DNA of 64,000 nt from NCBI GenBank assembly GCA_964036045.1, contig OZ038378.1, forward strand, positions 178,994,001-179,058,000, read 5' to 3'. Position numbers and translations under genes: made by a program. Origin of the DNA: Eutreptiella sp. 'Long Island Sound 2002'. Taxonomy: Eukaryota; Protista; Euglenida. The notes under the pieces were generated by a model. It searched no databases, was not told where the DNA came from, and saw only the letters and a program-made list of their open reading frames with translations. Each line of letters begins with the position of its first letter. Within the stretch, counting starts at the first letter, position 1. Shown in pieces: positions 6,227-64,000 of the stretch.

Positions 6227-6231
6227 CGGGC

Positions 6232-9399: not shown

Positions 9400-9458
9400 G
9401 TGGCAAAATAAAGCAATATCTGTGACTTCAACCACTCCAACTGTCATTTGTAGTGTAA

Positions 9459-10170: not shown

Positions 10171-10171
10171 A

Positions 10172-10600: not shown

Positions 10601-10670
10601 CCCCTAGGGGCCCCTAGTATCTCAAAGTATGGGTCTCTAGTACGGCCAGACGCCCAAATAGTTGCACTGC
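10595..10670 (+). repeat. Dispersed repeat; second copy at 20069-20135
   Basis: Shared ATGATGCCCCTAG...CAAAGTATGGGTCTCTAGTACGGCCAGACGCCC(C)AAATAGTTGCACTGC. Shorter TTGCACTG-type relatives lie at ~3180 and ~8140. Confidence 0.85.
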
Positions 10671-25224: not shown

Positions 25225-25572
25225 TCCTTGCATTCTGCCCCTATGAGGTTCTATGCCAACCCGACCGAAAACGTTCTTTGTCTTTCGCTGTGCCACGAAG
25301 TAGAAAGCCCATGCTTCTGCCTACAGGTCAGTGATTGGGGTACATTCAACTAAATGGTTCGTTTGGGTACACACAAACAAAGGCAAACATGCCGTAATGA
25401 ATCAATTGAATTCTTCTCGTTGTCTATAGGTTTGGAGCATAGCACACCACAATACCATCCAACTGCCAACAAATCTCTCACACAACAACACAACACACAC
25501 AACAAATCTCTCAATGACCACCTCAATAGAAACACATGTCTCCTGAATGCGAATAAGAAATAAAGGGTACCA

Positions 25573-25641
25573 TGTGCTGTTCAGGAGTGGTTCATCAACA
25601 GAATTCAGACAGTCGATTGTGAAAAGCATCCTGGTAGCACA
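25573..25641 (-). ncRNA. Candidate box C/D snoRNA 'B' (first of 44 copies, one per array-1 unit)
   Basis: TGTGCT-acc-AGGATGC(C-like)-18 nt (17 in this first copy)-CTGA(D')-6 nt-TTGATGA(C')-7 nt-CTGA(D)-ac-AGCACA. A perfect 6-bp flanking stem closes it. Box C is non-canonical. Confidence 0.45.
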
Positions 25642-25854
25642 AAAGCAGCAGAATAGTTGACAGTGGAAAACTTACTGGGAAGCCTTTGCATGAACCTTGC
25701 AAAGTAAACACAAAACAAAGTCATTCAAGTACAGAGGACAAAAACAGCATACTGCACCACAACACAGCTCACCTGATTGTCTGCAATGAATGGAACAATG
25801 TTTACACCCATGGCACTCCATACTACATGGTTGGTTAAGGTTGGTGGTGGAGCA

Positions 25855-25913
25855 TCAGACACCAACGGTCAGCAGCAGATTGTCAGTGTGAGTCTCTGAA
25901 TCAAATTCATCAC
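25855..25913 (-). ncRNA. Candidate box C/D snoRNA 'A' (first of 44 copies, one per array-1 unit; last at 50080-50138)
   Basis: GTGATGA(C)-20 nt-CTGA(D')-7 nt-CTGCTGA(C')-10 nt-CTGA(D), with flanking GGAG/CTCC complementarity. No target was verified. Confidence 0.55.
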
Positions 25914-28900
25914 TCTCCCAGAATGTCACACAACTTTGACACAAAGAAAAACTAAAGAACAAATAACAAATACATAAATGAAAAACCTGTCAATGAAAAA
26001 CATAGGACACCACAATACCATCCAACTGCCAACACATCTCTCACACAACAACACAACACACACAGCAAATCTCTCAATGACCACCTCAATAGAAACACAT
26101 GTCTCCTGAATGCGAATAAGAAATAAAGGGTACCATGTGCTGTTCAGGAGTGGTTCATCAACAGAATTCAGATAGTCGATTGTGAAAAAGCATCCTGGTA
26201 GCACAAAAGCAGCAGAATAGTTGACAGTGGAACACTTACTGGGAAGCCTTTGCATGAACCTTGCAAAGTAAACACAAGGCAAGTCATTTAAGTACAGAGG
26301 ACAAAAACAGCATACTGCACCACAACACAGCTCACCTGATTGTCTGCAATGAATGGAACAATGTTTACACCCATGGCACTCCATACTACATGGTTGGTTA
26401 AGGTTGGTGGTGGAGCATCAGACACCAACGGTCAGCAGCAGATTGTCAGTGTGAGTCTCTGAATCAAATTCATCACTCTCCCAGAATGTCACACAACTCT
26501 GAAACAAAGAAAAACTAATGAACAAATAACAAATACATAAATGAAGAACCTGTCAATGAAAAACATAGGACACCACAATACCATCCAACTGCCAACACAT
26601 CTCTCACACAACAACACAACACACACAGCAAATCTCTCAATGACCACCTCAATAGAAACACATGTCTCCTGAATGCGAATAAGTATTTAGGGCACCATGT
26701 GCTGTTCAGGAGTGGTTCATCAACAGAATTCAGACAGTCGATTGTGAAAAAGCATCCTGGTAGCACAAATGCAGCAGAATAGTTGACAGTGGAACACTTA
26801 CTGGGAAGCCTTTGCATGAACCTTGCAAAGTAAACACAAAACAAAGTCATTCAAGTACAGAGGACAAAAACAGCATACTGCACCACAACACAGCTCACCT
26901 GATTGTCCGCAATGAATGGAACAATGTTTACACCCATGGCACTCCATACTACATGGTTGGTTAAGGTTGGTGGTGGAGCATCAGACACCAACGGTCAGCA
27001 GCAGATTGTCAGTGTGAGTCTCTGAATCAAATTCATCACTCTCCCAGAATGTCACACAACTCTGAAACAAAGAAAAACTAAAGAACAAATAACAAATACA
27101 TAAATGAAGAACCGGTCATTGAAAAACATAGGACACCACAATACCATCCAACTGCCAACACATCTCTCACACAACAACACAACACACACAGCAAATCTCT
27201 CAATGACCACCTCAATAGAAACACATGTCTCCTGAATGCGAATAAGTATTTAGGGCACCATGTGCTGTTCAGGAGTGGTTCATCAACAGAATTCAGACAG
27301 TCGATTGTGAAAAAGCATCCTGGTAGCACAAAAGCAGCAGAATAGTTGACAGTGGAACACTTACTGGGAAGCCTTTGCATGAACCTTGCAAAGTAAACAC
27401 AAGGCAAGTCATTTAAGTACAGAGGACAAAAACAGCATACTGCACCACAACACAGCTCACCTGATTGTCTGCAATGAATGGAACAATGTTTACACCCATG
27501 GCACTCCATACTACATGGTTGGTTAAGGTTGGTGGTGGAGCATCAGACACCAACGGTCAGCAGCAGATTGTCAGTGTGAGTCTCTGAATCAAATTCATCA
27601 CTCTCCCAGAATGTCACACAACTCTGAAACAAAGAAAAACTAAAGAACAAATAACAAATACATAAATGAAGAACCTGTCAATGAAAAACATAGGACACCA
27701 CAATACCATCCAACTGCCAACACATCTCTCACACAACAACACAACACACACAACAAATCTCTCAATGACCACCTCAATAGAAACACATGTCTCCTGAATG
27801 CGAATAAGAAATAAAGGGTACCATGTGCTGTTCAGGAGTGGTTCATCAACAGAATTCAGACAGTCGATTGTGAAAAAGCATCCTGGTAGCACAAAAGCAG
27901 CAGAATAGTTGACAGTGGAACACTTACTGGGAAGCCTTTGCATGAACCTTGCAAAGTAAACACAAGGCAAGTCATTTAAGTACAGAGGACAAAAACAGCA
28001 TACTGCACCACAACACAGCTCACCTGATTGTCTGCAATGAATGGAACAATGTTTACACCCATGGCACTCCATACTACATGGTGGGCTAAGGTTGGTGGTG
28101 GAGCATCAGACACCAACGGTCAGCAGCAGATTGTCAGTGTGAGTCTCTGAATCAAATTCATCACTCTCCCAGAATGTCACACAACTCTGAAACAAAGAAA
28201 AACTAAAGAACAAATAACAAATACATAAATGAAGAACCTGTCAATGAAAAACATAGGACACCACAATACCATCCAACTGCCAACACATCTCTCACACAAC
28301 AACACAACACACACAGCAAATCTCTCAATGACCACCTCAATAGAAACACATGTCTCCTGAATGGGAATAAGAAAGAAAGGGTACCATGTGCTGTTCAGGA
28401 GTGGTTCATCAACAGAATTCAGACAGTCGATTGTGAAAAAGCATCCTGGTAGCACAAAAGCAGCAGAATAGTTGACAGTGGAACACTTACTGGGAAGCCT
28501 TTGCATGAACCTTGCAAAGTAAACACAAAACAAAGTCATTCAAGTACAGAGGACAAAAACAGCATACTGCACCACAACACAGCTCACCTGATTGTCTGCA
28601 ATCAATGGGACAATGTTTACACCCATGGCACTCCATAATACATGGTGGGCTAAGGTTGGTGGTGGAGCATCAGACACCAACGGTCAGCAGCAGATTGTCA
28701 GTGTGAGTCTCTGAATCAAATTCATCACTCTCCCAGAATGTCACACAACTCTGAAACAAAGAAGAACTAAAGAACAAATAACAAATACATAAATGAAGAA
28801 CCTGTCATTGAAAAACATAGGACACCACAATACCATCCAAATGCCAACACATCTCTCACACAACAACACAACACACACAGCAAATCTCTCAATGACCACC

Positions 28901-31900
28901 TCAATAGAAACACATGTCTTCTGAATGCGAATAAGAAATAAAGGGTACCATGTGCTGTTCAGGAGTGGTTCATCAACAGAATTCAGACAGTCGATTGTGA
29001 AAAAGCATCCTGGTAGCACAAAAGCAGCAGAATAGTTGACAGTGGAACACTTACTGGGAAGCCTTTGCATGAACCTTGCAAAGTAAACACAAGGCAAGTC
29101 ATTTAGGTACAGAGGACAAAAACAGCATACTGCACCACAACACAGCTCACCTGATTGTCTGCAATGAATGGAACAATGTTTACACCCATGGCACTCCATA
29201 CTACATGGTGGGTTAAGGTGGTGGAGCATCAGACACCAACGGTCAGCAGCAGATTGTCAGTGTGAGTCTCTGAATCAAATTCATCACTCTCCCAGAATGT
29301 CACACAACTCTGAAACAAAGAAAAACTAAAGAACAAATAACAAATACATAAATGAAAAACCTGTCAATGAAAAACATAGGACACCACAATACCATCCAAC
29401 TGCCAACACATCTCTCACACAACAACACAACACACACAGCAAATCTCTCAATGACCACCTCAATAGAAACACATGTCTCCTGAATGCGAATAAGAAATAA
29501 AGGGTACCATGTGCTGTTCAGGAGTGGTTCATCAACAGAATTCAGACAGTCGATTGTGAAAAAGCATCCTGGTAGCACAAAAGCAGCAGAATAGTTGACA
29601 GTGGAACACTTACTGGGAAGCCTTTGCATGAACCTTGCAAAGTAAACACAAGGCAAGTCATTTAAGTACAGAGGACAAAAACAGCATACTGCACCACAAC
29701 ACAGCTCACCTGATTGTCTGCAATGAATGGAACAATGTTTACACCCATGGCACTCCATAATACATGGTGGGCTAAGGTTGGTGGTGGAGCATCAGACACC
29801 AACGGTCAGCAGCAGATTGTCAGTGTGAGTCTCTGAATCAAATTCATCACTCTCCCTGAATGTCACACAACTCTGAAAAAAAGAAAAACTAAAGAACAAA
29901 TAACAAATACATAAATGAAGAACCTGTCATTGAAAAACATAGGACACCACAATACCATCCAACTGCCAACACATCTCTCACACAACAACACAACACACAC
30001 AGCAAATCTCTCAATGACCACCTCAATAGAAACACATGTCTCCTGAATGCGAATAAGTATTTAGGGCACCATGTGCTGTTCAGGAGTGGTTCATCAACAG
30101 AATTCAGACAGTCGATTGTGAAAAAGCATCCTGGTAGCACAAAAGCAGCAGAATAGTTGACAGTGGAACACTTACTGGGAAGCCTTTGCATGAACCTTGC
30201 AAAGTAAACACAAAACAAGGTCATTCAAGTACAGAGGACAAAAACAGCATACTGCACCACAACACAGCTCACTTGTTTGTCTGCAATGAATGGAACAATG
30301 TTTACACCCATGGCACTCCATACTACATGGTGGGCTAAGGTTGGTGGTGGAGCATCAGACACCAACGGTCAGCAGCAGATTGTCAGTGTGAGTCTCTGAA
30401 TCAAATTCATCACTCTCCCAGAATGTCACACAACTCTGAAACAGAGAAAAAATAAAGAACAAATAACAAATACATAAATGAAGAACCTGTCAATGAAAAA
30501 CATAGGACACCACAATACCATCCAAATGCCAACACATCTCTCACACAACAACACAACACACACAGCAAATCTCTCAATGACCACCTCAATAGAAACACAT
30601 GTCTCCTGAATGCGAATAAGAAATAAAGGGTACCATGTGCTGTTCAGGAGTGGTTCATCAACAGAATTCAGATAGTCGATTGTGAAAAAGCATCCTGGTA
30701 GCACAAAAGCAGCAGAATAGTTGACAGTGGAACACTTACTGGGAAGCCTTTGCATGAACCTTGCAAAGTAAACACAAGGCAAGTCATTTAAGTACAGAGG
30801 ACAAAAACAGCATACTGCACCACAACACAGCTCACCTGATTGTCTGCAATGAATGGAACAATGTTTACACCCATGGCACTCCATACTACATGGTTGGTTA
30901 AGGTTGGTGGTGGAGCATCAGACACCAACGGTCAGCAGCAGATTGTCAGTGTGAGTCTCTGAATCAAATTCATCACTCTCCCTGAATGTCACACAACTCT
31001 GAAACAAAGAAAAACTAAAGAATAAATAACAAATGAAGTATTGAAGAAACTGTCAATGAAAAACATAGGACACCACAATACCATCCAACTGCCAACACAT
31101 CTCTCACACAACAACACAACACACACAGCAAATCTCTCAATGACCACCTCAATAGAAACACATGTCTCCTGAATGCGAATAAGTATTTAGGGCACCATGT
31201 GCTGTTCAGGAGTGGTTCATCAACAGAATTCAGACAGTCGATTGTGAAAAAGCATCCTGGTAGCACAAAAGCAGCAGAATAGTTGACAGTGGAACACTTA
31301 CTGGGAAGCCTTTGCATGAACCTTGCAAAGTAAACACAAAACAAAGTCATTCAAGTACAGAGGACAAAAACAGCATACTGCACCACAACACAGCTCACTT
31401 GTTTGTCTGCAATGAATGGAACAATGTTTACACCCATGGCACTCCATACTACATGGTGGGCTAAGGTTGGTGGTGGAGCATCAGACACCAACGGTCAGCA
31501 GCAGATTGTCAGTGTGAGTCTCTGAATCAAATTCATCACTCTCCCAGAATGTCACACAACTCTGAAACAGAGAAAAAATAAAGAACAAATAACAAATACA
31601 TAAATGAAGAACCTGTCAATGAAAAACATAGGACACCACAATACCATCCAAATGCCAACACATCTCTCACACAACAACACAACACACACAGCAAATCTCT
31701 CAATGACCACCTCAATAGAAACACATGTCTCCTGAATGCGAATAAGAAATAAAGGGTACCATGTGCTGTTCAGGAGTGGTTCATCAACAGAATTCAGATA
31801 GTCGATTGTGAAAAAGCATCCTGGTAGCACAAAAGCAGCAGAATAGTTGACAGTGGAACACTTACTGGGAAGCCTTTGCATGAACCTTGCAAAGTAAACA

Positions 31901-34900
31901 CAAGGCAAGTCATTTAAGTACAGAGGACAAAAACAGCATACTGCACCACAACACAGCTCACCTGATTGTCTGCAATGAATGGAACTATGTTTACACCCAT
32001 GGCACTCCATACTACATGGTTGGTTAAGGTTGGTGGTGGAGCATCAGACACCAACGGTCAGCAGCAGATTGTCAGTGTGAGTCTCTGAATCAAATTCATC
32101 ACTCTCCCTGAATGTCACACAACTCTGAAACAAAGAAAAACTAAAGAATAAATAACAAATGAAGTATTGAAGAAACTGTCAATGAAAAACATAGGACACC
32201 ACAATACCATCCAACTGCCAACACATCTCTCACACAACAACACAACACACACAGCAAATCTCTCAATGATCACCTCAATAGAAACACATGTCTTCTGAAT
32301 GCGAATAAGAAATAAAGGGTACCATGTGCTGTTCAGGAGTGGTTCATCAACAGAATTCAGACAGTCGATTGTGAAAAAGCATCCTGGTAGCACAAAAGCA
32401 GCAGAATAGTTGACAGTGGAACACTTACTGGGAAGCCTTTGCATGAACCTTGCAAAGTAAACACAAAACAAAGTCATTCAAGTACAGAGGACAAAAACAG
32501 CATACTGCACCACAACACAGCTCACCTGATTGTCTGCAATGAATGGAACAATGTTTACACCCATGGCACTCCATAATACATGGTGGGCTAAGGTTGGTGG
32601 TGGAGCATCAGACACCAACGGTCAGCAGCAGATTGTCAGTGTGAGTCTCTGAATCAAATTCATCACTCTCCCTGAATGTCACACAACTCTGAAACAAAGA
32701 AAAACTAAAGAGCAAATAACAAATACATAAATGAAGAACCTGTCATTGAAAAACATAGGACACCACAATACCATCCAACTGCCAACACATCTCTCACACA
32801 ACAACACAACACACACAGCAAATCTCTCAATGACCACCTCAATAGAAACACATGTCTTCTGAATGCGAATAAGAATTTAGGGCACCATGTGCTGTTCAGG
32901 AGTGGTTCATCAACAGAATTCAGACAGTCGATTGTGAAAAAGCATCCTGGTAGCACAAAAGCAGCAGAATAGTTGACAGTGGAACACTTACTGGGAAGCC
33001 TTTGCATGAACCTTGCAAAGTAAACACAAAACAAAGTCATTCAAGTACAGAGGACAAAAACAGCATACTGCACCACAACACAGCTCACTTGATTGTCCGC
33101 AATGAATGGAACAATGTTTACACCCATGGCACTCCATACTACATGGTTGGTTAAGGTTGGTGGTGGAGCATCAGACACCAACGGTCAGCAGCAGATTGTC
33201 AGTGTGAGTCTCTGAATCAAATTCATCACTCTCCCAGAATGTCACACAACTCTGAAACAGAGAAAAAATAAAGAACAAATAACAAATACATAAATGAAAA
33301 ACCTGTCAATGAAAAACATAGGACACCACAATACCATCCAACTGCCAACACATCTCTCACACAACAACACAACACACACAGCAAATCTCTCAATGACCAC
33401 CTCAATAGAAACACATGTCTCCTGAATGCGAATAAGAAATAAAGGGTACCATGTGCTGTTCAGGAGTGGTTCATCAACAGAATTCAGACAGTCGATTGTG
33501 AAAAAGCATCCTGGTAGCACAAAAGCAGCAGAATAGTTGACAGTGGAACACTTACTGGGAAGCCTTTGCATGAACCTTGCAAAGTAAACACAAAACAAAG
33601 TCATTTAAGTACAGAGGACAAAAACAGCATACTGCACCACAACACAGCTCACCTGATTGTCCGCAATGAATGGAACTATGTTTACACCCATGGCACTCCA
33701 TACTACATGGTTGGTTAAGGTTGGTGGTGGAGCATCAGACACCAACGGTCAGCAGCAGATTGTCAGTGTGAGTCTCTGAATCAAATTCATCACTCTCCCT
33801 GAATGTCACACAACTCTGAAACAAAGAAAAACTAAAGAACAAATAACAAATGAAGTATTGAAGAAACTGTCAATGAAAAACATAGGACACCACAATACCA
33901 TCCAACTGCCAACACATCTCTCACACAACAACACAACACACACAGCAAATCTCTCAATGATCACCTCAATAGAAACACATGTCTTCTGAATGCGAATAAG
34001 TATTTAGGGCACCATGTGCTGTTCAGGAGTGGTTCATCAACAGAATTCAGACAGTCGATTGTGAAAAAGCATCCTGGTAGCACAAAAGCAGCAGAATAGT
34101 TGACAGTGGAACACTTACTGGGAAGCCTTTGCATGAACCTTGCAAAGTAAACACAAAACAAAGTCATTTAAGTACAGAGGACAAAAACAGCATACTGCAC
34201 CACAACACAGCTCACCTGATTGTCCGCAATGAATGGAACTATGTTTACACCCATGGCACTCCATACTACATGGTTGGTTAAGGTTGGTGGTGGAGCATCA
34301 GACACCAACGGTCAGCAGCAGATTGTCAGTGTGAGTCTCTGAATCAAATTCATCACTCTCCCAGAATGTCACACAACTCTGAAACAAAGAAAAACTAAAG
34401 AACAAATAACAAATGAAGTATTGAAGAAACTGTCAATGAAAAACATAGGACACCACAATACCATCCAACTGCCAACACATCTCTCACACAACAACACAAC
34501 ACACACAGCAAATCTCTCAATGACCACCTCAATAGAAACACATGTCTTCTGAATGCGAATAAGAAATAAAGGGTACCATGTGCTGTTCAGGAGTGGTTCA
34601 TCAACAGAATTCAGACAGTCGATTGTGAAAAAGCATCCTGGTAGCACAAAAGCAGCAGAATAGTTGACAGTGGAACACTTACTGGGAAGCCTTTGCATGA
34701 ACCTTGCAAAGAAAACACAAAACAAAGTCATTCAAGTACAGAGGACAAAAACAGCATACTGCACCACAACACAGCTCACCTGATTGTCTGCAATGAATGG
34801 AACAATGTTTACACCCATGGCACTCCATACTACATGGTGGGCTAAGGTTGGTGGTGGAGCATCAGACACCAACGGTCAGCAGCAGATTGTCAGTGTGAGT

Positions 34901-37900
34901 CTCTGAATCAAATTCATCACTCTCCCAGAATGTCACACAACTCTGAAACAAAGAAAAACTAAAGAACAAATAACAAATACATAAATGAAGAACCTGTCAT
35001 TGAAAAACATAGGACACCACAATACCATCCAACTGCCAACAAATCTCTCACACAACAACACAACACACACAGCAAATCTCTCAATGACCACCTCAATAGA
35101 AACACATGTCTCCTGAATGCGAATAAGAAATAAAGGGTACCATGTGCTGTTCAGGAGTGGTTCATCAACAGAATTCAGACAGTCGATTGTGAAAAAGCAT
35201 CCTGGTAGCACAAAAGCAGCAGAATAGTTGACAGTGGAACACTTACTGGGAAGCCTTTGCATGAACCTTGCAAAGTAAACACAAAACAAAGTCATTCAAG
35301 TACAGAGGACAAAAACAGCATACTGCACCACAACACAGCTCACCTGATTGTCTGCAATGAATGGAACTATGTTTACACCCATGGCACTCCATACTACATG
35401 GTGGGCTAAGGTTGGTGGTGGAGCATCAGACACCAACGGTCAGCAGCAGATTGTCAGTGTGAGTCTCTGAATCAAATTCATCACTCTCCCAGAATGTCAC
35501 ACAACTCTGAAACAAAGAAAAACTAAAGAATAAATAACAAATGAAGTATTGAAGAACCTGTCAATGAAAAACATAGGACACCACAATACCATCCAACTGC
35601 CAACACATCTCTCACACAACAACACAACACACACAGCAAATCTCTCAATGATCACCTCAATAGAAACACATGTCTCCTGAATGCGAATAAGTATTTAGGG
35701 CACCATGTGCTGTTCAGGAGTGGTTCATCAACAGAATTCAGACAGTCGATTGTGAAAAAGCATCCTGGTAGCACAAAAGCAGCAGAATAGTTGACAGTGG
35801 AACACTTACTGGGAAGCCTTTGCATGAACCTTGCAAAGAAAACACAAAACAAAGTCATTCAAGTACAGAGGACAAAAACAGCATACTGCACCACAACACA
35901 GCTCACCTGATTGTCTGCAATGAATGGAACAATGTTTACACCCATGGCACTCCATACTACATGGTTGGTTAAGGTTGGTGGTGGAGCATCAGACACCAAC
36001 GGTCAGCAGCAGATTGTCAGTGTGAGTCTCTGAATCAAATTCATCACTCTCCCAGAATGTCACACAACTCTGAAACAAAGAAAAACTAAAGAACAAATAA
36101 CAAATACATAAATGAAGAACCTGTCATTGAAAAACATAGGACACCACAATACCATCCAACTGCCAACACATCTCTCACACAACAACACAACACACACAGC
36201 AAATCTCTCAATGACCACCTCAATAGAAACACATGTCTTCTGAATGCGAATAAGAAATAAAGGGTACCATGTGCTGTTCAGGAGTGGTTCATCAACAGAA
36301 TTCAGACAGTCGATTGTGAAAAAGCATCCTGGTAGCACAAAAGCAGCAGAATAGTTGACAGTGGAACACTTACTGGGAAGCCTTTGCATGAACCTTGCAA
36401 AGTAAACACAAAACAAAGTCATTCAAGTACAGAGGACAAAAACAGCATACTGCACCACAACACAGCTCACCTGATTGTCTGCAATGAATGGAACAATGTT
36501 TACACCCATGGCACTCCATACTACATGGTGGGCTAAGGTTGGTGGTGGAGCATCAGACACCAACGGTCAGCAGCAGATTGTCAGTGTGAGTCTCTGAATC
36601 AAATTCATCACTCTCCCAGAATGTCACACAACTCTGAAACAAAGAAAAACTAAAGAACAAATAACAAATGAAGTATTGAAGAAACTGTCAATGAAAAACA
36701 TAGGACACCACAATACCATCCAACTGCCAACACATCTCTCACACAACAACACAACACACACAGCAAATCTCTCAATGATCACCTCAATAGAAACACATGT
36801 CTTCTGAATGCGAATAAGAATTTAGGGCACCATGTGCTGTTCAGGAGTGGTTCATCAACAGAATTCAGACAGTCGATTGTGAAAAAGCATCCTGGTAGCA
36901 CAAAAGCAGCAGAATAGTTGACAGTGGAACACTTACTGGGAAGCCTTTGCATGAACCTTGCAAAGTAAACATAAAACAAAGTCATTCAAGTACAGAGGAC
37001 AAAAACAGCATACTGCACCACAACACAGCTCACCTGATTGTCTGCAATGAATGGAACAATGTTTACACCCATGGCACTCCATACTACATGGTTGGTTAAG
37101 GTTGGTGGTGGAGCATCAGACACCAACGGTCAGCAGCAGATTGTCAGTGTGAGTCTCTGAATCAAATTCATCACTCTCCCAGAATGTCACACAACTCTGA
37201 AACAAAGAAAAACTAAAGAACAAATAACAAATACATAAATGAAAAACCTGTCAATGAAAAACATAGGACACCACAATACCATCCAAATGCCAACACATCT
37301 CTCACACAACAACACAACACACACAGCAAATCTCTCAATGACCACCTCAATAGAAACACATGTCTCCTGAATGCGAATAAGAAATAAAGGGTACCATGTG
37401 CTGTTCAGGAGTGGTTCATCAACAGAATTCAGACAGTCGATTGTGAAAAAGCATCCTGGTAGCACAAAAGCAGCAGAATAGTTGACAGTGGAACACTTAC
37501 TGGGAAGCCTTTGCATGAACCTTGCAAAGTAAACACAAAACAAAGTCATTTAAGTACAGAGGACAAAAACAGCATACTGCACCACAACACAGCTCACCTG
37601 ATTGTCCGCAATGAATGGAACTATGTTTACACCCATGGCACTCCATACTACATGGTTGGTTAAGGTTGGTGGTGGAGCATCAGACACCAACGGTCAGCAG
37701 CAGATTGTCAGTGTGAGTCTCTGAATCAAATTCATCACTCTCCCTGAATGTCACACAACTCTGAAACAAAGAAAAACTAAAGAACAAATAACAAATGAAG
37801 TATTGAAGAAACTGTCAATGAAAAACATAGGACACCACAATACCATCCAACTGCCAACACATCTCTCACACAACAACACAACACACACAGCAAATCTCTC

Positions 37901-49900: not shown

Positions 49901-50433
49901 TGGGAAGCCTTTGCATGAACCTTGCAAAGAAAACACAAAACAAAGTCATTCAAGTACAGAGGACAAAAACAGCATACTGCACCACAACACAGCTCACCTG
50001 ATTGTCTGCAATGAATGGAACAATGTTTACACCCATGGCACTCCATAATACATGGTGGGTTAAGGTTGGTGGTGGAGCATCAGACACCAACGGTCAGCAG
50101 CAGATTGTCAGTGTGAGTCTCTGAATCAAATTCATCACTCTCCCAGAATGTCACGCAGAGACACAGAGACTTGAGCAGGGTATGAGTACCTTGCCTGGCT
50201 CATACACCACCACAGGTGACACGCAGTAATCATGAAAATGGTAAGTGCCAGGTATGCAAGGACACTGTGGAGCAAATGTAAAATCAAAACCTACCTCCAC
50301 AATGAGTGCATCCAAGCCAATCTGGAAAAAACAAATGGAAACCGGGACACAGGGTTTCTTAGCTTTTCCCCCCTCTGTCTTTGCCTTCTCTGCAGTTGCA
50401 GATCCAGCAAGGCATAATCACATTCAGCACCCA

Positions 50434-50500
50434 ACAAGCTCAGACAAAAAATGAAATCATGAATCATATCCCAACCATTAATGATTGCATCATAGCTCAT
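50434..50500 (-). ncRNA. Candidate box C/D snoRNA 'C' (first of 22 copies, one per array-2 unit)
   Basis: ATGAGC-t-ATGATGC(C)-19 nt-ATGA(D'-like)-3 nt-ATGATTT(C'-like)-10 nt-CTGA(D)-GCTTGT. The terminal stem has canonical geometry (6 bp including two G-U pairs). Confidence 0.4.
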
Positions 50501-53500
50501 AGCCACACACAGCAGGACCCATAGCAGGCAACAAACATCATACAGGACAAACACAACCATGGAGGGGATGTAATGTAGTGATTGCGGAAATGGCAAACAA
50601 TGGTATGGTAGTGCATGAAATACCTGGGACTGCCATGCAGTAAACCCAATGCATTATTACATGGTACTGAGCATATCTGGCACACGCTTCTGATCATAAT
50701 TCACACCACGAGAATCATGATACAGGACAAACGGTGCTTCAGGAATACAATCACAGAGACTTGAGCAGGGTATGAGTACCTTGCCTGGCTCATACACCAC
50801 CACAGGTGACACGCAGTAATCATGAAAATGGTAAGTACCAGGTATGCAAGGACACTGTGGAGCAAATGTAAAATCAAAACCTACCTCCACAATGTGTGCA
50901 TCCAAGCCAATCTGGAAAAAACAAATGGAAACCGGGACACAGGGTTTCTTAGCTTTTCCCCCTTCTGTCTTTGCCTTCTCTGCAGTTGCAGATCCAGCAA
51001 GGCATAATCACATTCAGCACCCAACAAGCTCAGACAAAAAATGAAATCATGAATCATATCCCAACCATTAATGATTGCATCATAGCTCATAGCCACACAC
51101 AGCAGGACCCATAGCAGGCAACAAACATCATACAGGACAAACACAACCATGGAGGGGATGTAATGTAGTGATTGTGGAAATGGCAAACAATGGTATGGTA
51201 GTGCATGAAATACCTGGGACTGCCATGCAGTAAACCCAATGCATTATTACATGGTACTGAGCATATCTGGCACACGCTTCTGATCATAATTCACACCACG
51301 AGAATCATGATACAGGACAAACGGTGCTTCAGGAATACAATCACAGAGACTTGAGCAGGGTATGAGTACCTTGCCTGGCTCATACACCAACACAGGTGAC
51401 ACGCAGTAATCATGAAAATGGTAAGTGCCAGGTATGCAAGGACACTGTGGAGCAAATGTAAAATCAAAACCTACCTCCACAGTTTGTGAAGCCAATCTGG
51501 AAAAAACAAATGGAAACCAGGACACAGGGTTTCTTAGCTTTTCCCCCCTCTGTCTTTGCCTTCTCTGCAGTTGCAGATCCAGCATGGCAGAATCACATTC
51601 AGCACCCAACAAGCTCAGACAAAAAATGAAATCATGAATCATATCCCAACCATTAATGATTGCATCATAGCTCATAGCCACACACAGCAGGACCCATAGC
51701 AGGTAACAAACATCATACAGGACAAACACAACCATGGAGGGGATGTAATGTAGTGATTGTGGAAATGGCAAACAATGGTATGGTAGTGCATGAAATACCT
51801 GGGACTGCCATGCAGTAAACCCAATGCATTATTACATGGTACTGAGCATATCTGGCACACGCTTCTGATCATAATTCATAGCACGAGAATCATGATACAG
51901 GACAAACGGTGCTTCAGGAATACAATCACAGAGACTTGAGCAGGGTATGAGTACCTTGCCTGGCTCATACACCACCACAGGTGACACGCAGTAATCATGA
52001 AAATGGTAAGTACCAGGTATGCAAGGACACTGTGGAGCAAATGTAAAATCAAAACCTACCTCCACAATGTGTGCATCCAAGCCAATCTGGAAAAAACAAA
52101 TGGAAACCGGGACACAGGGTTTCTTAGCTTTTCCCCCCTCTGTCTTTGCCTTCTCTGCAGTTGCAGATCCAGCAAGGCATAATCACATTCAGCACCCAAC
52201 CAGCTCAGACAAAAAATGAAATCATGAATCATATCCCAACCATTAATGATTGCATCATAGCTCATAGCCACACACAGCAGGACCCATAGCAGGCAACAAA
52301 CATCATACAGGACAAACACAACCATGGAGGGGATGTAATGTAGTGATTGCGGAAATGGCAAACAATGGTATGGTAGTGCATGAAATACCTGGGACTGCCA
52401 TGCAGTAAACCCAATGCATTATTACATGGTACTGAGCATATCTGGCACACGCTTCTGATCATAATTCACACCACGAGAATCATGATACAGGACAAACGGT
52501 GCTTCAGGAATACAATCACAGAGACTTGAGCAGGGTATGAGTACCTTGCCTGGCTCATACACCACCACAGGTGACACGCAGTAATCATGAAAATGGTAAG
52601 TACCAGGTATGCAAGGACACTGTGGAGCAAATGTAAAATCAAAACCTACCTCCACAATGTGTGCATCCAAGCCAATCTGGAAAAAACAAATGGAAACCAG
52701 GACACAGGGTTTCTTAGCTTTCCCCCCCTCTGTCTTTGCCTTCTCTGCAGTTGCAGATCCAGCAAGGCATAATCACATTCAGCACCCAACAAGCTCAGAC
52801 AAAAAATGAAATCATGAATCATATCCCAACCATTAATGATTGCATCATAGCTCATAGCCACACACAGCAGGACCCATAGCAGGCAACAAACATCATACAG
52901 GACAAACACAACCATGGAGGGGATGTAATGTAGTGATTGCGGAAATGGCAAACAATGGTATGGTAGTGCATGAAATACCTGTGACTGCCATGCAGTAAAC
53001 CCAATGCATTATTACATGGTACTGAGCATATCTGGCACACGCTTCTGATCATAATTCACACCACGAGAATCATGATACAGGACAAACGGTGCTTCAGGAA
53101 TACAATCACAGAGACTTGAGCAGGGTATGAGTACCTTGCCTGGCTCATACACCACCACAGGTGACACGCAGTAATCATGAAAATGGTAAGTACCAGGTAT
53201 GCAAGGACACTGTGGAGCAAATGTAAAATCAAAACCTACCTCCACAATGTGTGCATCCAAGCCAATCTGGAAAAAACAAATGGAAACCAGGACACAGGGT
53301 TTCTTAGCTTTCCCCCCCTCTGTCTTTGCCTTCTCTGCAGTTGCAGATCCAGCAAGGCATAATCACATTCAGCACCCAACAAGCTCAGACAAAAAATGAA
53401 ATCATGAATCATATCCCAACCATTAATGATTGCATCATAGCTCATAGCCACACACAGCAGGACCCATAGCAGGCAACAAACATCATACAGGACAAACACA

Positions 53501-56500
53501 ACCATGGAGGGGATGTAATGTAGTGATTGCGGAAATGGCAAACAATGGTATGGTAGTGCATGAAATACCTGGGACTGCCATGCAGTAAACCCAATGCATT
53601 ATTACATGGTACTGAGCATATCTGGCACACGCTTCTGATCATAATTCACACCACGAGAATCATGATACAGGACAAACGGTGCTTCAGGAATACAATCACA
53701 GAGACTTGAGCAGGGTATGAGTACCTTGCCTGGCTCATACACCACCACAGGTGACACGCAGTAATCATGAAAATGGTAAGTACCAGGTATGCAAGGACAC
53801 TGTGGAGCAAATGTAAAATCAAAACCTACCTCCACAATGTGTGCATCCAAGCCAATCTGGAAAAAACAAATGGAAACCGGGACACAGGGTTTCTTAGCTT
53901 TTCCCCCTTCTGTCTTTGCCTTCTCTGCAGTTGCAGATCCAGCAAGGCATAATCACATTCAGCACCCAACAAGCTCAGACAAAAAATGAAATCATGAATC
54001 ATATCCCAACCATTAATGATTGCATCATAGCTCATAGCCACACACAGCAGGACCCATAGCAGGCAACAAACATCATACAGGACAAACACAACCATGGAGG
54101 GGATGTAATGTAGTGATTGTGGAAATGGCAAACAATGGTATGGTAGTGCATGAAATACCTGGGACTGCCATGCAGTAAACCCAATGCATTATTACATGGT
54201 ACTGAGCATATCTGGCACACGCTTCTGATCATAATTCACACCACGAGAATCATGATACAGGACAAACGGTGCTTCAGGAATACAATCACAGAGACTTGAG
54301 CAGGGTATGAGTACCTTGCCTGGCTCATACACCAACACAGGTGACACGCAGTAATCATGAAAATGGTAAGTGCCAGGTATGCAAGGACACTGTGGAGCAA
54401 ATGTAAAATCAAAACCTACCTCCACAGTTTGTGAAGCCAATCTGGAAAAAACAAATGGAAACCAGGACACAGGGTTTCTTAGCTTTTCCCCCCTCTGTCT
54501 TTGCCTTCTCTGCAGTTGCAGATCCAGCATGGCAGAATCACATTCAGCACCCAACAAGCTCAGACAAAAAATGAAATCATGAATCATATCCCAACCATTA
54601 ATGATTGCATCATAGCTCATAGCCACACACAGCAGGACCCATAGCAGGTAACAAACATCATACAGGACAAACACAACCATGGAGGGGATGTAATGTAGTG
54701 ATTGTGGAAATGGCAAACAATGGTATGGTAGTGCATGAAATACCTGGGACTGCCATGCAGTAAACCCAATGCATTATTACATGGTACTGAGCATATCTGG
54801 CACACGCTTCTGATCATAATTCATAGCACGAGAATCATGATACAGGACAAACGGTGCTTCAGGAATACAATCACAGAGACTTGAGCAGGGTATGAGTACC
54901 TTGCCTGGCTCATACACCACCACAGGTGACACGCAGTAATCATGAAAATGGTAAGTACCAGGTATGCAAGGACACTGTGGAGCAAATGTAAAATCAAAAC
55001 CTACCTCCACAATGTGTGCATCCAAGCCAATCTGGAAAAAACAAATGGAAACCGGGACACAGGGTTTCTTAGCTTTTCCCCCCTCTGTCTTTGCCTTCTC
55101 TGCAGTTGCAGATCCAGCAAGGCATAATCACATTCAGCACCCAACCAGCTCAGACAAAAAATGAAATCATGAATCATATCCCAACCATTAATGATTGCAT
55201 CATAGCTCATAGCCACACACAGCAGGACCCATAGCAGGCAACAAACATCATACAGGACAAACACAACCATGGAGGGGATGTAATGTAGTGATTGCGGAAA
55301 TGGCAAACAATGGTATGGTAGTGCATGAAATACCTGGGACTGCCATGCAGTAAACCCAATGCATTATTACATGGTACTGAGCATATCTGGCACACGCTTC
55401 TGATCATAATTCACACCACGAGAATCATGATACAGGACAAACGGTGCTTCAGGAATACAATCACAGAGACTTGAGCAGGGTATGAGTACCTTGCCTGGCT
55501 CATACACCACCACAGGTGACACGCAGTAATCATGAAAATGGTAAGTACCAGGTATGCAAGGACACTGTGGAGCAAATGTAAAATCAAAACCTACCTCCAC
55601 AATGTGTGCATCCAAGCCAATCTGGAAAAAACAAATGGAAACCAGGACACAGGGTTTCTTAGCTTTCCCCCCCTCTGTCTTTGCCTTCTCTGCAGTTGCA
55701 GATCCAGCAAGGCATAATCACATTCAGCACCCAACAAGCTCAGACAAAAAATGAAATCATGAATCATATCCCAACCATTAATGATTGCATCATAGCTCAT
55801 AGCCACACACAGCAGGACCCATAGCAGGCAACAAACATCATACAGGACAAACACAACCATGGAGGGGATGTAATGTAGTGATTGCGGAAATGGCAAACAA
55901 TGGTATGGTAGTGCATGAAATACCTGTGACTGCCATGCAGTAAACCCAATGCATTATTACATGGTACTGAGCATATCTGGCACACGCTTCTGATCATAAT
56001 TCACACCACGAGAATCATGATACAGGACAAACGGTGCTTCAGGAATACAATCACAGAGACTTGAGCAGGGTATGAGTACCTTGCCTGGCTCATACACCAA
56101 CACAGGTGACACGCAGTTATCATGAAAATGGTAAGTGCCAGGTATGCAAGGACACTGTGGAGCAAATGTAAAATCAAAACCTACCTCCACAATGTGTGCA
56201 TCCAAGCCAATCTGGAAAAAACAAATGGAAACCGGGACACAGGGTTTCTTAGCTTTTCCCCCCTCTGTCTTTGCCTTCTCTGCAGTTGCAGATCCAGCAA
56301 GGCATAATCACATTCAGCACCCAACCAGCTCAGACAAAAAATGAAATCATGAATCATATCCCAACCATTAATGATTGCATCATAGCTCATAGCCACACAC
56401 AGCAGGACCCATAGCAGGCAACAAACATCATACAGGACAAACACAACCATGGAGGGGATGTAATGCAGTGATCGTGGAACTGGCAAACAATGGTATGGTA

Positions 56501-59500
56501 GTGCATGAAATACCTGGGACTGCCATGCAGTAAACCCAATGCATTATTACATGGTACTGAGCATATCTGGCACACGCTTCTGATCATAATTCACACCACG
56601 AGAATCATGATACAGGACAAACGGTGCTTCAGGAATACAATCACAGAGACTTGAGCAGGGTATGAGTACCTTGCCTGGCTCATACACCACCACAGGTGAC
56701 ACGCAGTTATCATGAAAATGGTAAGTGCTAGGTATGCAAGGACACTGTGGAGCAAATGTAAAAATCAAAACCTACCTCCACAATGAGTGCATCCAAGCCA
56801 ATCTGGAAAAAACAAATGGAAACCGGGACACAGGGTTTCTTAGCTTTCCCCCCCTCTGTCTTTGCCTTCTCTGCAGTTGCAGATCCAGCAAGGCATAATC
56901 ACATTCAGCACCCAACCAGCTCAGACAAAAAATGAAATCATGAATCATATCCCAACCATTAATGATTGCATCATAGCTCATAGCCACACACAGCAGGACC
57001 CATAGCAGGCAACAAACATCATACAGGACAAACACAACCATGGAGGGGATGTAATGCAGTGATCGTGGAACTGGCAAACAATGGTATGGTAGTGCATGAA
57101 ATACCTGGGACTGCCATGCAGTAAACCCAATGCATTATTACATGGTACTGAGCATATCTGGCACACGCTTCTGATCATAATTCACACCACGAGAATCATG
57201 ATACAGGACAAACGGTGCTTCAGGAATACAATCACAGAGACTTGAGCAGGGTATGAGTACCTTGCCTGGCTCATACACCAACACAGGTGACACGCAGTAA
57301 TCATGAAAATGGTAAGTGCCAGGTATGCAAGGACACTGTGGAGCAAATGTAAAATCAAAACCTACCTCCACAATGAGTGCATCCAAGCCAATCTGGAAAA
57401 AACAAATGGAAACCAGGACACAGGGTTTCTTAGCTTTCCCCCCCTCTGTCTTTGCCTTCTCTGCAGTTGCAGATCCAGCAAGGCATAATCACATTCAGCA
57501 CCCAACAAGCTCAGACAAAAAATGAAATCATGAATCATATCCCAACCATTAATGATTGCATCATAGCTCATAGCCACACACAGCAGGACCCATAGCAGGT
57601 AACAAACATCATACAGGACAAACACAACCATGGAGGGGATGTAATGTAGTGATTGTGGAACTGGCAAACAATGGTATGGTAGTGCATGAAATACCTGGGA
57701 CTGCCATGCAGTAAACCCAATGCATTATTACATGGTACTGAGCATATCTGGCACACGCTTCTGATCATAATTCACACCACGAGAATCATGATACAGGACA
57801 AACGGTGCTTCAGGAATACAATCACAGAGACTTGAGCAGGGTATGAGTACCTTGCCTGGCTCATACACCACCACAGGTGACACGCAGTTATCATGAAAAT
57901 GGTAAGTGCTAGGTATGCAAGGACACTGTGGAGCAAATGTAAAAATCAAAACCTACCTCCACAATGTGTGCATCCAAGCCAATCTGGAAAAAACAAATGG
58001 AAACCGGGACACAGGGTTTCTTAGCTTTCCCCCCCTCTGTCTTTGCCTTCTCTGCAGTTGCAGATCCAGCAAGGCATAATCACATTCAGCACCCCACCAG
58101 CTCAGACAAAAAATGAAATCATGAATCATATCCCAACCATTAATGATTGCATCATAGCTCATAGCCACACACAGCAGGACCCATAGCAGGCAACAAACAT
58201 CATACAGGACAAACACAACCATGGAGGGGATGTAATGCAGTGATCGTGGAACTGGCAAACAATGGTATGGTAGTGCATGAAATACCTGGGACTGCCATGC
58301 AGTAAACCCAATGCATTATTACATGGTACTGAGCATATCTGGCACACGCTTCTGATCATAATTCACACCACGAGAATCATGATACAGGACAAACGGTGCT
58401 TCAGGAATACAATCACAGAGACTTGAGCAGGGTATGAGTACCTTGCCTGGCTCATACACCACCACAGGTGACACGCAGTAATCATGAAAATGGTAAGTAC
58501 CAGGTATGCAAGGACACTGTGGAGCAAATGTAAAATCAAAACCTACCTCCACAATGTGTGCATCCAAGCCAATCTGGAAAAAACAAATGGAAACCGGGAC
58601 ACAGGGTTTCTTAGCTTTTCCCCCCTCTGTCTTTGCCTTCTCTGCAGTTGCAGATCCAGCAAGGCATAATCACATTCAGCACCCAACAAGCTCAGACAAA
58701 AAAATGAAATCATGAATCATATCCCAACCATTAATGATTGCATCATAGCTCATAGCCACACACAGCAGGACCCATAGCAGGCAACAAACATCATACAGGA
58801 CAAACACAACCATGGAGGGGATGTAATGTAGTCATTGTGGAAATGGCAAACAATGGTATGGTAGTGCATGAAATACCTGTGACTGCCATGCAGTAAACCC
58901 AATGCATTATTACATGGTACTGAGCATATCTGGCACACGCTTCTGATCATAATTCACACCACGAGAATCATGATACAGGACAAACGGTGCTTCAGGAATA
59001 CAATCACAGAGACTTGAGCAGGGTATGAGTACCTTGCCTGGCTCATACACCACCACAGGTGACACGCAGTAATCATGAAAATGGTAAGTGCCAGGTATGC
59101 AAGGACACTGTGGAGCAAATGTAAAATCAAAACCTACCTCCACAATGTGTGCATCCAAGCCAATCTGGAAAAAACAAATGGAAACCGGGACACAGGGTTT
59201 CTTAGCTTTCCCCCCCTCTGTCTTTGCCTTCTCTGCAGGTGCAGATCCAGCAAGGCACAATCACATTCAGCACCCAACAAGCTCAGACAAAAAATGAAAT
59301 CATGAATCATATCCCAACCATTAATGATTGCATCGTAGTTCATAGCCACACACAGCAGGACCCATAGCAGGCAACAAACATCATACAGGACAAACACAAC
59401 CATGGAGGGGATGTAATGTAGCGATTGTGGAAATGGCAAACAATGGTATGGTAGTGCATGAAATACCTGGGACTGCCATGCAGTAAACCCAATGCATTAT

Positions 59501-61131
59501 TACATGGTACTGAGCATATCTGGCACACGCTTCTGATCATAATTCACACCACGAGAATCATGATACAGGACAAACGGTGCTTCAGGAATACAATCACAGA
59601 GACTTGAGCAGGGTATGAGTACCTTGCCTGGCTCATACACCACCACAGGTGACACGCAGTAATCATGAAAATGGTAAGTACCAGGTATGCAAGGACACTG
59701 TGGAGCAAATGTAAAAATCAAAACCTACCTCCACAATGTGTGCATCCAAGCCAATCTGGAAAAAACAAATGGAAACCGGGACACAGGGTTTCTTAGCTTT
59801 CCCCCCCTCTGTCTTTGCCTTCTCTGCAGTTGCAGATCCAGCAAGGCATAATCACATTCAGCACCCAACCAGCTCAGACAAAAAATGAAATCATGAATCA
59901 TATCCCAACCATTAATGATTGCATCATAGCTCATAGCCACACACAGCAGGACCCATAGCAGGCAACAAACATCATACAGGACAAACACAACCATGGAGGG
60001 GATGTAATGTAGTGATTGTGGAAATGGCAAACAATGGTATGGTAGTGCATGAAATACCTGGGACTGCCATGCAGTAAACCCAATGCATTATTACATGGTA
60101 CTGAGCATATCTGGCACACGCTTCTGATCATAATTCACACCACGAGAATCATGATACAGGACAAACGGTGCTTCAGGAATACAATCACAGAGACTTGAGC
60201 AGGGTATGAGTACCTTGCCTGGCTCATACACCACCACAGGTGACACGCAGTAATCATGAAAATGGTAAGTGCTAGGTATGCAAGGACACTGTGGAGCAAA
60301 TGTAAAATCAAAACCTACCTCCACAATGTGTGCATCCAAGCCAATCTGGAAAAAACAAATGAAAACCGGGACACAGGGTTTCTTAGCTTTTCCCCCTCTG
60401 TCTTTGCCTTCTCTGCAGTTGCAGATCCAGCAAGGCATAATCACATTCAGCACCCAACAAGCTCAGACAAAAAAATGAAATCATGAATCATATCCCAACC
60501 ATTAATGATTGCATCATAGCTCATAGCCACACACAGCAGGACCCATAGCAGGCAACAAACATCATACAGGACAAACACAACCATGGAGGGGATGTAATGT
60601 AGTGATTGCGGAAATGGCAAACAATGGTATGGTAGTGCATGAAATACCTGTGACTGCCATGCAGTAAACCCAATGCATTATTACATGGTATTGAGCATAT
60701 CTAGCACACGCTTCTGATCATAATTCACACCACGAGAATCATGATACAGGACAAACGGTGCTTCAGGAATACAATCACAGAGACTTGAGCAGGGTATGAG
60801 TACCTTGCCTGGCTCATACACCACCACAGGTGACACACAGTTATCATGAAAATGGTAAGTACCAGGTATGCAAGGACACTGTGGAGCAAATGTAAAATCA
60901 AAACCTACCTCCACAATGAGTGCATCCAAGCCAATCTGGAAAAAACAAATGGAAACCGGAACATGGGGTTTCTTAGCTTTCCCCCCCTGTGTCTTTGCCT
61001 TTTCTGCAGTCTCTGCAGTCTCTCCAGCAAGGGGCAAAATCACATTCCCCAACAAACTCAGACAAAAAATGAAATCATGAATCATATCCCAACCATTAAT
61101 GATTGCATCATAGCTCATAGCCACACGCAGC

Positions 61132-62179
61132 CAAGGCTGAATTAAACACTGGCCAAAGGGTTTTTGGCCAGTGGCCAGTAAAGTATTGATTTCAATGTTT
61201 ATTTTTGTTTATTTTGTGATTTTTTTGTTATTTTTGCCAATTAACTGATGCTTTTTGCAAGGTCATTTGCACTTCCTACTTGCTTGAGGTTGTTTTCATC
61301 CAAATTTCCTTGAAATACACACTGCTCTTTGGTACCTCGTTGCCGACACGGGCCATACAAGCCTCGTCGACAGTCGCAATACACCTGGTGCAAGAGTGTC
61401 GCACACCACATATGTTCGCACCGCAACAAGCGCAACGCACAGCAGTTAGCCCAAATGATGCCAAAGTGGGTGTGGCTGCCGGCTGTGGACGCACGGGCCT
61501 AGCGACAACCATGGACGCTGGCTCCTTGAAGGTGAAGGAATAGCCGTCCCGGGTGCCGTCGCTTTTGGCTGCACGGGCGACTTGGGTGTGCTTGAGGTGC
61601 CGCAAAGACCCTCCCGCCTCGGAATGCAGGAAACGGAGGGCCTCGGCAACACTGTGGAACTGCAACCAAGCCGCACCCTCAGCCGCAACCGGGCCAAGTG
61701 GGCGCATCCATACGTCAGAACCCGTGAGAACAATGAGGAAGGGAAAGAGAGTCTGACAAAGGGATATACGGAACAATAAAAAATGTTACTGACACACATG
61801 CACACATGCACATGACATGAATGCGGGGCATGAATGAGTGTACATGGTGTGTCCGTGTGTCCTTTCATGCCATGAGCCACATGCTAGATCTTCCCGCTAT
61901 GATGCACCATGCCGGCCGACACACAATACTATTCACCCTTCCCTGCACCACATTCTAACTTTGATACCCTCAAACATGCACAAATGCACAATGCTCTAAA
62001 ATTACGTCACACAAGGTACAGAAACCATCATCGATATATGCAGGAATGTCAATAAACACCAATAAACGCCGATAAACAACGGTTATCCCCCCGAAAAGGG
62101 CGCTTTTCGAAAAATAAACGCAAAAACGCGTTTATTTGCCATTTGGCCAGTGGCCTGGCCAGTACTTAATTCACCCTTG
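61132..62179. mobile_element. Non-autonomous hAT-like DNA transposon inserted in array 2
   Basis: 24-bp TIRs CAAGGCTGAATTAAACACTGGCCA / CAAGGGTGAATTAAGTACTGGCCA (21/24 match). 8-bp TSD CACGCAGC (61124-61131) / CACCCAGC (62180-62187), where the empty-site consensus is CACACAGC. Subterminal TGGCCAG and ATAAAC repeats are present. Confidence 0.85.
61276..61730 (-). pseudogene. Coding-like cargo in the hAT-like element: NUMOD1-like HTH plus Cys-rich finger
   Basis: WLQFHSVAEALRFLHSEAGGSLRHLKHTQVARAAKSDGTRDGYSFTF shows an F.S..EA.R.L...GY.F.F pattern. It is followed by CACCGANICGVRHSCTRCIATVDEAC. There is no transposase catalytic core. Confidence 0.4.
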
Positions 62180-64000
62180 CACCCAGCAAGACCCATAGAA
62201 GGTAACAAACATCATACAGGACAAACACAACCATGGAGGGGATGTAATGTAGTGATTGTGGAAATGGCAAACAATGGTATGGTAGTGCATGAAATACCTG
62301 GGACTGCCATGCAGTAAACCCAATGCATTATTACATGGTACTGAGCATATCTGGCACACGCTTCTGATCATAATTCACACCACGAGAATCATGATACAGG
62401 ACAAACGGTGCTTCAGGAATACAATCACAGAGACTTGAGCAGGGTATGAGTACCTTGCCTGGCTCATACACCAACACAGGTGACACGCAGTAATCATGAA
62501 AATGGTAAGTGCCAGGTATGCAAGGACACTGTGGAGCAAATGTAAAATCAAAACCTACCTCCACAATGAGTGCATCCAAGCCAATCTGGAAAAAACAAAT
62601 GGAAACCGGGACACGGGGTTTCTTAGCTTTCCCCCCCTCTGTCTTTGCCTTCTCTGCAGGTGCAGATCCAGCAAGGCACAATCACATTCAGCACCCAACA
62701 AGCTCAGACAAAAAATGAAATCATGAATCATATCCCAACCATTAATGATTGCATCATAGCTCATAGCCACACACAGCAGGACCCATAGCAGGCAACAAAC
62801 ATCATACAGGACAAACACAACCATGGAGGGGATGTAATGTAGCGATTGTGGAACTGGCAAACAATGGTATGGTAGTGCATGAAATACCTGGGACTGCCAT
62901 GCAGTAAACCCAATGCATTATTACATGGTACTGAGCATATCTGGCACACGCTTCTGATCATAATTCACACCACGAGAATCATGATACAGGACAAACGGTG
63001 CTTCAGGAATACAATCACAGAGACTTGAGCAGGGTATGAGTACCTTGCCTGGCTCATACACCAACACAGGTGACACGCAGTAATCATGAAAATGGTAAGT
63101 GCCAGGTATGCAAGGACACTGTGGAGCAAATGTAAAATCAAAACCTACCTCCACAATGTGTGCATCCAAGCCAATCTGGAAAAAACAAATGGAAACCAGG
63201 ACACAGGGTTTCTTAGCTTTTCCCCCCTCTGTCTTTGCCTTCTCTGCAGTTGCAGATCCAGCAAGGCATAATCACATTCAGCACCCAACAAGCTCAGACA
63301 AAAAATGAAATCATGAATCATATCCCAACCATTAATGATTGCATCATAGCTCATAGCCACACACAGCAGGACCCATAGCAGGTAACAAACATCATACAGG
63401 ACAAACACAACCATGGAGGGGATGTAATGTAGCGATTGTGGAACTGGCAAACAATGGTATGGCAGTGCATGAAATACCTGGGACTGCCATGCAGTAAACC
63501 CAATGCATTATTACATGGTACTGAGCATATCTGGCACACGCTTCTGATCATAATTCACACCACGAGAATCATGATACAGGACAAACGGTGCTTCAGGAAT
63601 ACAATCACAGAGACTTGAGCAGGGTATGAGTACCTTGCCTGGCTCATACGGTACACCAACACAGGTGACACGCAGTAATCATGAAAATGGTAAGTGCCAG
63701 GTATGCAAGGACACTGTGGAGCAAATGTAAAAATCAAAACCTACCTCCACAATGAGCGCATCCAAGCCAATCTGGAAAAAACAAATGGAAACTGGAACAT
63801 GGGGTTTCTTAGCTTTTCCTCCCTCTGTCTTTGCCTTCTCTGCAGTCTCTGCAGTTCTTCCAGCAAGGTGCACAATCACATTCCCCAACAAGCTCAGACA
63901 AAAAATGAAATCATGAATCATATCCCAACCATTAATGATTGCATCATAGCTCATAGCCACACACAGCAGGACCCATAGCAGGCAACAAACATCATACAGG

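Follow-up and report, generated by a model that had tools for sequence, protein, structure and literature searches.

Two tandem arrays of satellite proportions abut in the genome of the euglenid Eutreptiella sp. 'Long Island Sound 2002', and they raise the question of whether such DNA is a satellite of the usual kind or an amplified set of RNA genes. The stretch analysed here, referred to as the window, comprises 64,000 nt of contig OZ038378.1 (G000:C1:178994001-179058000), and searches were extended to the genome of 2.28 Gb. A preliminary description, made from the letters of the window alone, had read the two arrays as amplified box C/D guide-RNA cassettes of the Euglena type. Our best explanation, to which we assign a probability of about 0.82, is that both arrays represent head-to-tail amplifications of small nucleolar RNA (snoRNA) genes on the minus strand, with cassettes A and B of array 1 specifying guides for ribosomal RNA (rRNA) and cassette C of array 2 probably a third RNA of this class.

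The two arrays adjoin at window position ~50161/50162 without any spacer, and comparison of their units revealed no homology between them. In both, the minus strand is T/G-rich. The 44 units of array 1 (window ~25438-50161) follow one another head to tail on the minus strand at a start-to-start spacing of 563 or 564 bp, with single exceptions of 559 and 562 bp, and the copies are 96-100% identical. Identity is 98.0% at a lag of two units versus 97.25% at a lag of one, which amounts to a faint dimeric higher-order repeat. Between window positions ~33000 and 50000 two sub-variants were seen to alternate (spacing 563/564, identity swing ~2%). The units of array 2 measure ~590 bp and begin at 50162; cassette C recurs in them every 585-600 bp apart from one gap of 1646 bp, which is produced by an inserted element with terminal inverted repeats (TIRs). 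Array 2 runs ~12.4 kb beyond the end of the window and stops at ~G000:C1:179070375. A genome pattern search with a cassette-C 30-mer gave 41 occurrences, all in a single run. The locus thus continues past the window edge; as a whole it measures about 51 kb and holds about 129 cassettes.

Cassettes A, B and C are all located on the minus strand and, genome-wide, are confined to these arrays. In each of them a box C and a box D are joined by a short terminal stem, and internal D' and C' boxes occur at guide-length spacing. Cassette A has the order GUGAUGA, 20 nt, CUGA, 5 nt, UGCUGA, 10 nt, CUGA; its four boxes are perfect and its stem is GGAG/CUCC (4 bp). Cassette B reads AGGAUGC, 19 nt, CUGA, 7 nt, UGAUGA, 7 nt, CUGA, with a stem, GUGCU/AGCAC, of 5-6 bp that is offset by 2-3 nt. 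Cassette C reads AUGAUGC, 19 nt, AUGA, 4 nt, UGAUUU, 10 nt, CUGA and is closed by a stem of 5-6 bp. Cassette A was found in every array-1 unit, and 42 of the 44 copies are identical across the 59 nt that its four boxes span. Cassette B was found in 43 units at no more than 3 mismatches and in one terminal copy that has lost 1 nt, 35 copies being identical over the interval that runs from its box C through its box D. Every array-2 unit of the window (22/22) contains cassette C. The locus thus has the form of a Euglenozoan repeated cluster of same-strand genes, with two genes per unit in the 44 units of array 1 and one candidate per unit in the 41 units of array 2. The cassettes are no more structured than their shuffled counterparts (z 0.35 to 1.67), as expected of open guide regions. 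Representative copies are listed in Table 1. As to arrays and cassette layout, our results agree with the preliminary description, which had reported two abutting arrays with A and B in 44 units and C in 22, the same boxes, spacings and shared strand, and a locus of at least 39 kb; that figure is true, and the actual size is larger because array 2 passes the window edge.

Table 1. Window coordinates of the two arrays, of one representative copy of each cassette and of the inserted element
Feature	Window position	Strand	Details
Array 1	25438..50161	-	44 tandem 563/564-bp units, each with cassettes A and B
Array 2	50162..64000	-	590-bp units, each with cassette C; 22 in window, 41 in total
Representative cassette A	39928..39998	-	box C 39992-39986, D' 39965-39962, D 39937-39934
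Representative cassette B	39652..39719	-	box C 39711-39705, D' 39686-39683, C' 39675-39670, D 39662-39659
Representative cassette C	56326..56388	-	box C 56383-56377, D 56333-56330
TIR element, ~1.05 kb	61141..62190		within one array-2 unit, ~30 nt upstream of cassette C

The organism's own ribosomal DNA (rDNA) unit was used as the reference for guide-target pairing (L009; small-subunit (SSU) rRNA at 2145-4371, 5.8S rRNA at 4471-4649 and large-subunit (LSU) rRNA at 5128-9806). This rDNA, on L009/L010 (G000:C1267), is a chromosomal tandem repeat of ~9.4 kb, with SSU starts spaced at 9383 bp and an SSU of 2227 nt. An antisense element was defined as a stretch of at least 10 nt that is complementary to rRNA or small nuclear RNA (snRNA) and stops no more than 2 nt short of D or D' on the upstream side. 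Both cassettes of array 1 contain one. In cassette A, the 13 nt that end flush with D' (offset 0) are perfectly Watson-Crick complementary to SSU rRNA at L009 2490-2502, and the pairing reaches 16 nt when the CUG of D' is counted (L009 2487-2502). By chance, a match of 16 nt in exactly this position at D' would arise ~0.001 times per unit. The 16-mer target is kept in 10 of 10 rDNA copies sampled and lies in a region of the SSU core that can be aligned, at Rfam model position ~302. This pairing predicts methylation of SSU A350 (L009 2494), in GUGUG[A]GUCUCUGACC.

In cassette B, 11 nt of perfect antisense at offset 1 from D' match LSU rRNA at L009 7619-7629. The target region is GGGUCAGUCGAUUGU, which we recognize as corresponding to a conserved sequence of the LSU core; a 261-nt piece around it gave no match to the Rfam LSU model, and it was placed by its conserved flanking sequence. 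The predicted methylation in this case is at the U at L009 7622, in GGGUCAG[U]CGAUUGU. The D guide of cassette B also has a match, 8 nt long, perfect and flush with box D, at L009 7561-7568. This lies 57 nt upstream of the D' target, in the same 70-nt stretch of LSU rRNA. Because an 8-mer match that near the D' target is expected only ~0.3% of the time, the D guide may provide a second or accessory pairing, at the G in GAGU[G]GUU. Other rRNA matches of 10-12 nt in the units were rejected as chance, because the control strand gives a 13-mer. The 17-mers formed by the guide plus D' of cassettes A and B were found only in array 1 in the genome-wide pattern search.

The preliminary description had counted, among several conditions that together would refute its reading, comparable box patterns at similar frequency in shuffled units. 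For a loose pattern, which requires no more than boxes C and D with a stem of at least 4 bp, this frequency is indeed high (37-46% of dinucleotide-shuffled units), so that boxes alone are weak evidence. The full C-D'-C'-D layout was present in 4.3% of the shuffled units for array 1 and in 1.5% for array 2, and two full layouts within one unit in 0.23%. On the plus strand of the array-1 and array-2 units no full layout was found. When a guide of at least 11 nt beside D or D' was demanded together with the layout, 0.8% of 2000 shuffled array-1 units contained a match, and the real unit holds two. Applied to both strands of 84 kb, the detector of layout plus guide recovered 84 matches to A and B, every one on the minus strand, and a sole other match, a weak one of 10 nt on the plus strand. 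Variation among the 44 copies of array 1 is also unevenly distributed. Differences per site are ~11 times fewer in the cassettes than in the spacers (0.086 versus 0.98), and a minor allele present in at least 3 copies occurs at 1 of 139 cassette sites versus 32 of 424 spacer sites (p=0.0013). The placement of antisense at D', the shuffled controls and the low variation strongly support, at the level of sequence, the reading of array 1 as an amplified rRNA-methylation guide locus.

On this reading each array-1 unit would encode a pair of compact box C/D snoRNAs, one ~59-71 nt and the other 53-68 nt long, and each array-2 unit most likely a third, from cassette C. The minus strand would be transcribed, probably across many units, and the RNAs would be cut from the longer transcript and trimmed back to their terminal stems. 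By the general mechanism of C/D ribonucleoproteins, they would then assemble with Snu13, Nop56, Nop58 and fibrillarin. The stretch just upstream of D', whose complementarity to rRNA was computed above, would pair with rRNA, and 2'-O-methylation would by the standard rule fall on the rRNA nucleotide that faces position 5 of the guide, that is, on SSU A350 and the LSU U at L009 7622. Because the guides occur nowhere else in the genome, the A and B RNAs would have to come from these arrays. The high copy number and the concerted evolution of the units (97-98% identity between units) probably serve high output, as in other multi-copy small-RNA genes of euglenids. From the copy number, the 97-98% homogeneity and the two-unit periodicity we infer unequal crossing-over and gene conversion, which would maintain a high-output locus.

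Several observations weigh against this account. An 11-nt match to the rDNA such as that of cassette B, taken alone and with position ignored, would arise by chance about once per unit, and box C of this cassette (AGGAUGC) is degenerate, with two mismatches, although the GA core is retained. The contrast in variation between cassettes and spacers is supportive, not decisive, because parts of the spacers vary as little as the cassettes do. An Rfam search of the window returned no family at gathering score; at E values up to 10 it gave weak generic C/D and H/ACA matches only, all on the minus strand. The modification map of E. gracilis is that of a different euglenid and is not directly transferable to the predicted sites, since the SSU (2227 nt here) and the rDNA differ. 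The E. gracilis 18S map lists Gm390, Cm393, pseudouridine 403 and Am407. With an estimated offset of 57, Gm390, pseudouridine 403 and Am407 land on G, U and A350 of the sequence studied here, and Cm393 lands on U; this agreement is suggestive only.

The remaining points of this kind concern cassette C, and they also favor the alternative that survives best, namely that only array 1 is a snoRNA array and that array 2 is an ordinary satellite, an amplified spacer or a decayed former snoRNA gene. No convincing target for cassette C was found in the whole rDNA unit, spacers included, where its best duplex scores 12.2 versus a shuffle mean of 11.95, and no credible target was found in U1, U2, U4, U5 or U6 of this genome. 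Two matches of its D guide, at L009 7234 and 4137, are 10 bp long with two G.U pairs; we rejected them as chance matches of a U-rich guide, and one of the two has a G.U pair at the methylation position. The D' (AUGA) and C' (UGAUUU) boxes are degenerate, the deficit of variation in the cassette is not significant, and the terminal stem has an A.C mismatch in 7 of 41 copies. Compensatory evolution of this stem was considered and rejected as unclean. Most copies have a G-C pair, with 4 G.U, 2 A-U and 7 A.C variants; the common G-to-A change in the 5' strand is thus accompanied by a compensating C-to-U change in 2 copies and leaves A.C in 7. A satellite origin is also favored by the frequency of loose box layouts in shuffled units and by the want of homology to array 1. 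Against it, a layout as strict as that of cassette C (box C with at most 1 mismatch, stem of at least 5 bp) occurs in only 0.4% of shuffles. Array 2 adjoins the supported snoRNA array without a gap and has its cassette on the same strand. The first 30 nt of cassette C are identical in 38 of the 41 copies, and its best sub-threshold Rfam matches are to C/D families over the whole model on the minus strand, for example SNORD47 (E=0.21). We consider this alternative rather unlikely, and lean with some reserve toward cassette C being a real C/D RNA. As only the box layout supports cassette C, array 2 is a probable, not a demonstrated, snoRNA array.

The preliminary description had added that guides without an rRNA or snRNA match would constitute a high-copy orphan system. 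For cassettes A and B this is refuted, because rRNA antisense is placed exactly at the D' guide position, in SSU for A and LSU for B; cassette C alone is without a target in the rDNA unit and the five snRNAs. The broader claim of amplified Euglena-type C/D guide genes is likewise borne out for array 1, and for array 2 as far as layout goes. A tentative possibility, which we hold at clearly less than even odds, is that cassette C is a highly expressed, high-copy orphan that guides neither rRNA nor the five snRNAs. It might then have a target in spliced-leader RNA, transfer RNA or messenger RNA, or a non-guide role in the folding or processing of pre-rRNA. On present sequence grounds we regard array 2 as probably a third C/D RNA gene array for which a target was not found in the sequences searched.

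A further alternative accepts the genes as genuine snoRNA genes by descent but supposes that the array is largely silent heterochromatin, in which few or no copies are transcribed and the copy number has no function. It would account for the transposon insertion tolerated in array 2, for the guide or box changes in some copies and for the absence of an identifiable promoter. However, the A and B guides have no copy in the genome outside array 1, so that at least some portion of each array has to be expressed for the sites to be modified, and the whole RNA is identical in 42 of the 44 copies of A and in 35 copies of B. We judge a silent array to be improbable. That both arrays are plain satellite DNA, with coincidental box patterns and rRNA matches, fits their satellite-like structure, 97-98% identity and higher-order periodicity, the lack of an Rfam match at gathering score and the fact that box layout alone is not rare, but it is very hard to sustain against a 16-nt match exactly at D', two layout-plus-guide cassettes per unit when 0.8% of shuffles have even one, matches on one strand only, variation excluded from the cassettes, and two cassette B guides that match the same 70-nt stretch of LSU rRNA.

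The units were also examined for other RNA genes. A scan for pseudouridine guides, defined by a pocket and an AGA or ACA box, gave marginal matches only, with two G.U pairs and minimal stems, and two of these sit at the artificial wrap-around junction; no H/ACA-like (AGA-box) guide was thus recognized in the units. A sub-threshold match to snoF1_F2 (E=0.58) proved to be a 31-nt hairpin without a usable pocket. A 17-nt motif that occurs twice in the array-2 unit was considered as an extra C/D gene and rejected, having neither D box nor stem, and several further box-C-like sites, judged by eye, likewise have no D box or stem. Once per array-2 unit there is a stable, imperfect hairpin (56132-56218, minus strand) with an inner stem of ~16 bp and an outer stem (-28.9 kcal/mol, z=-3.0 relative to shuffled sequence). 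No AGA or ACA box follows it and no pocket for rRNA was found in it; it could be a processing signal. The TIR element in array 2 is a non-autonomous DNA element with the ends GG[G/C]TGAATTAA..ACTGGCCA. It is an interruption and no part of the RNA genes.

The preliminary description placed the locus upstream of two minus-strand genes, which is correct only in a loose sense. The nearest recognizable pieces are an open reading frame or exon with an Mpv17/PMP22 domain (17156-17755, minus strand, E=3.3e-17), 7.7 kb downstream of array 1, and a fragment of a DDE_Tnp_4 (Harbinger/PIF-type) transposase (9459-10232, minus strand, E=1.8e-6). The window also contains, at 10171-10601 and 4500-4947, a 171-bp repeat in 2.5 copies and 10-bp microsatellites of the AATTGCGG(A) type. 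Upstream of array 2, in unique sequence, lies a Harbinger-like transposase remnant (L012 2700-3700; G000:C1:179070700-179071700), bracketed by two blocks of a CACGCAGTGCG-like tandem repeat of 10-11 nt. Neither a gene recognizable by Pfam nor a recognizable promoter was found upstream of array 2.

If the arrays are read as amplified guide loci, a 51-kb 'satellite' in a euglenid chromosome would be working gene space. The analysis yields two concrete guide-target predictions, SSU A350 and a U of the LSU core, in a group whose rRNA is more heavily modified than any other known. The long assembly shows the size of the arrays directly and places each guide at one locus only. Since the arrangement has already been described in Euglena and trypanosomatids, of which this is a large and clean new example, the gain is one of cataloguing, not of a new principle; the point of wider interest is cassette C, whose target was not found in the rDNA unit or the five snRNAs.

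The closest known system is that of E. gracilis, in which the rRNA carries 349 modifications, mostly 2'-O-methylations and pseudouridines, the guide snoRNA genes are clustered and polycistronically expressed, and the rDNA is an 11-kb extrachromosomal circle. Like the E. gracilis clusters (Russell, Schnare and Gray 2004, 2006), the locus described here would encode compact C/D RNAs of ~55-70 nt with recognizable D' and C' boxes, mostly with one working guide per RNA and, in array 1, with more than one same-strand gene per unit, in the service of a heavily modified rRNA. The two organisms differ in their ribosomal genes, the rDNA being here a 9.4-kb chromosomal tandem with an SSU of 2227 nt. The E. 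gracilis SSU is 2305 nt long, and the snoRNA clusters of that species are reportedly themselves tandemly repeated. Compared with those clusters, the present locus has a low gene density, with one or two genes per 0.56-0.59 kb, and no pseudouridine guide was found in its units; it comprises 44 and 41 copies over ~51 kb, in two unrelated arrays fused without a spacer and read from an assembly. In trypanosomes, too, snoRNA genes lie in repeated clusters and are processed from polycistronic transcripts. The likeness to the trypanosomatids Leptomonas collosoma and Trypanosoma brucei thus extends to both the clustering of the genes and the repetition of the clusters, but trypanosomatid clusters usually mix C/D genes with single-hairpin H/ACA-like genes and are repeated few times, while the genes recognized here are of the C/D type only, in 41-44 repeats.

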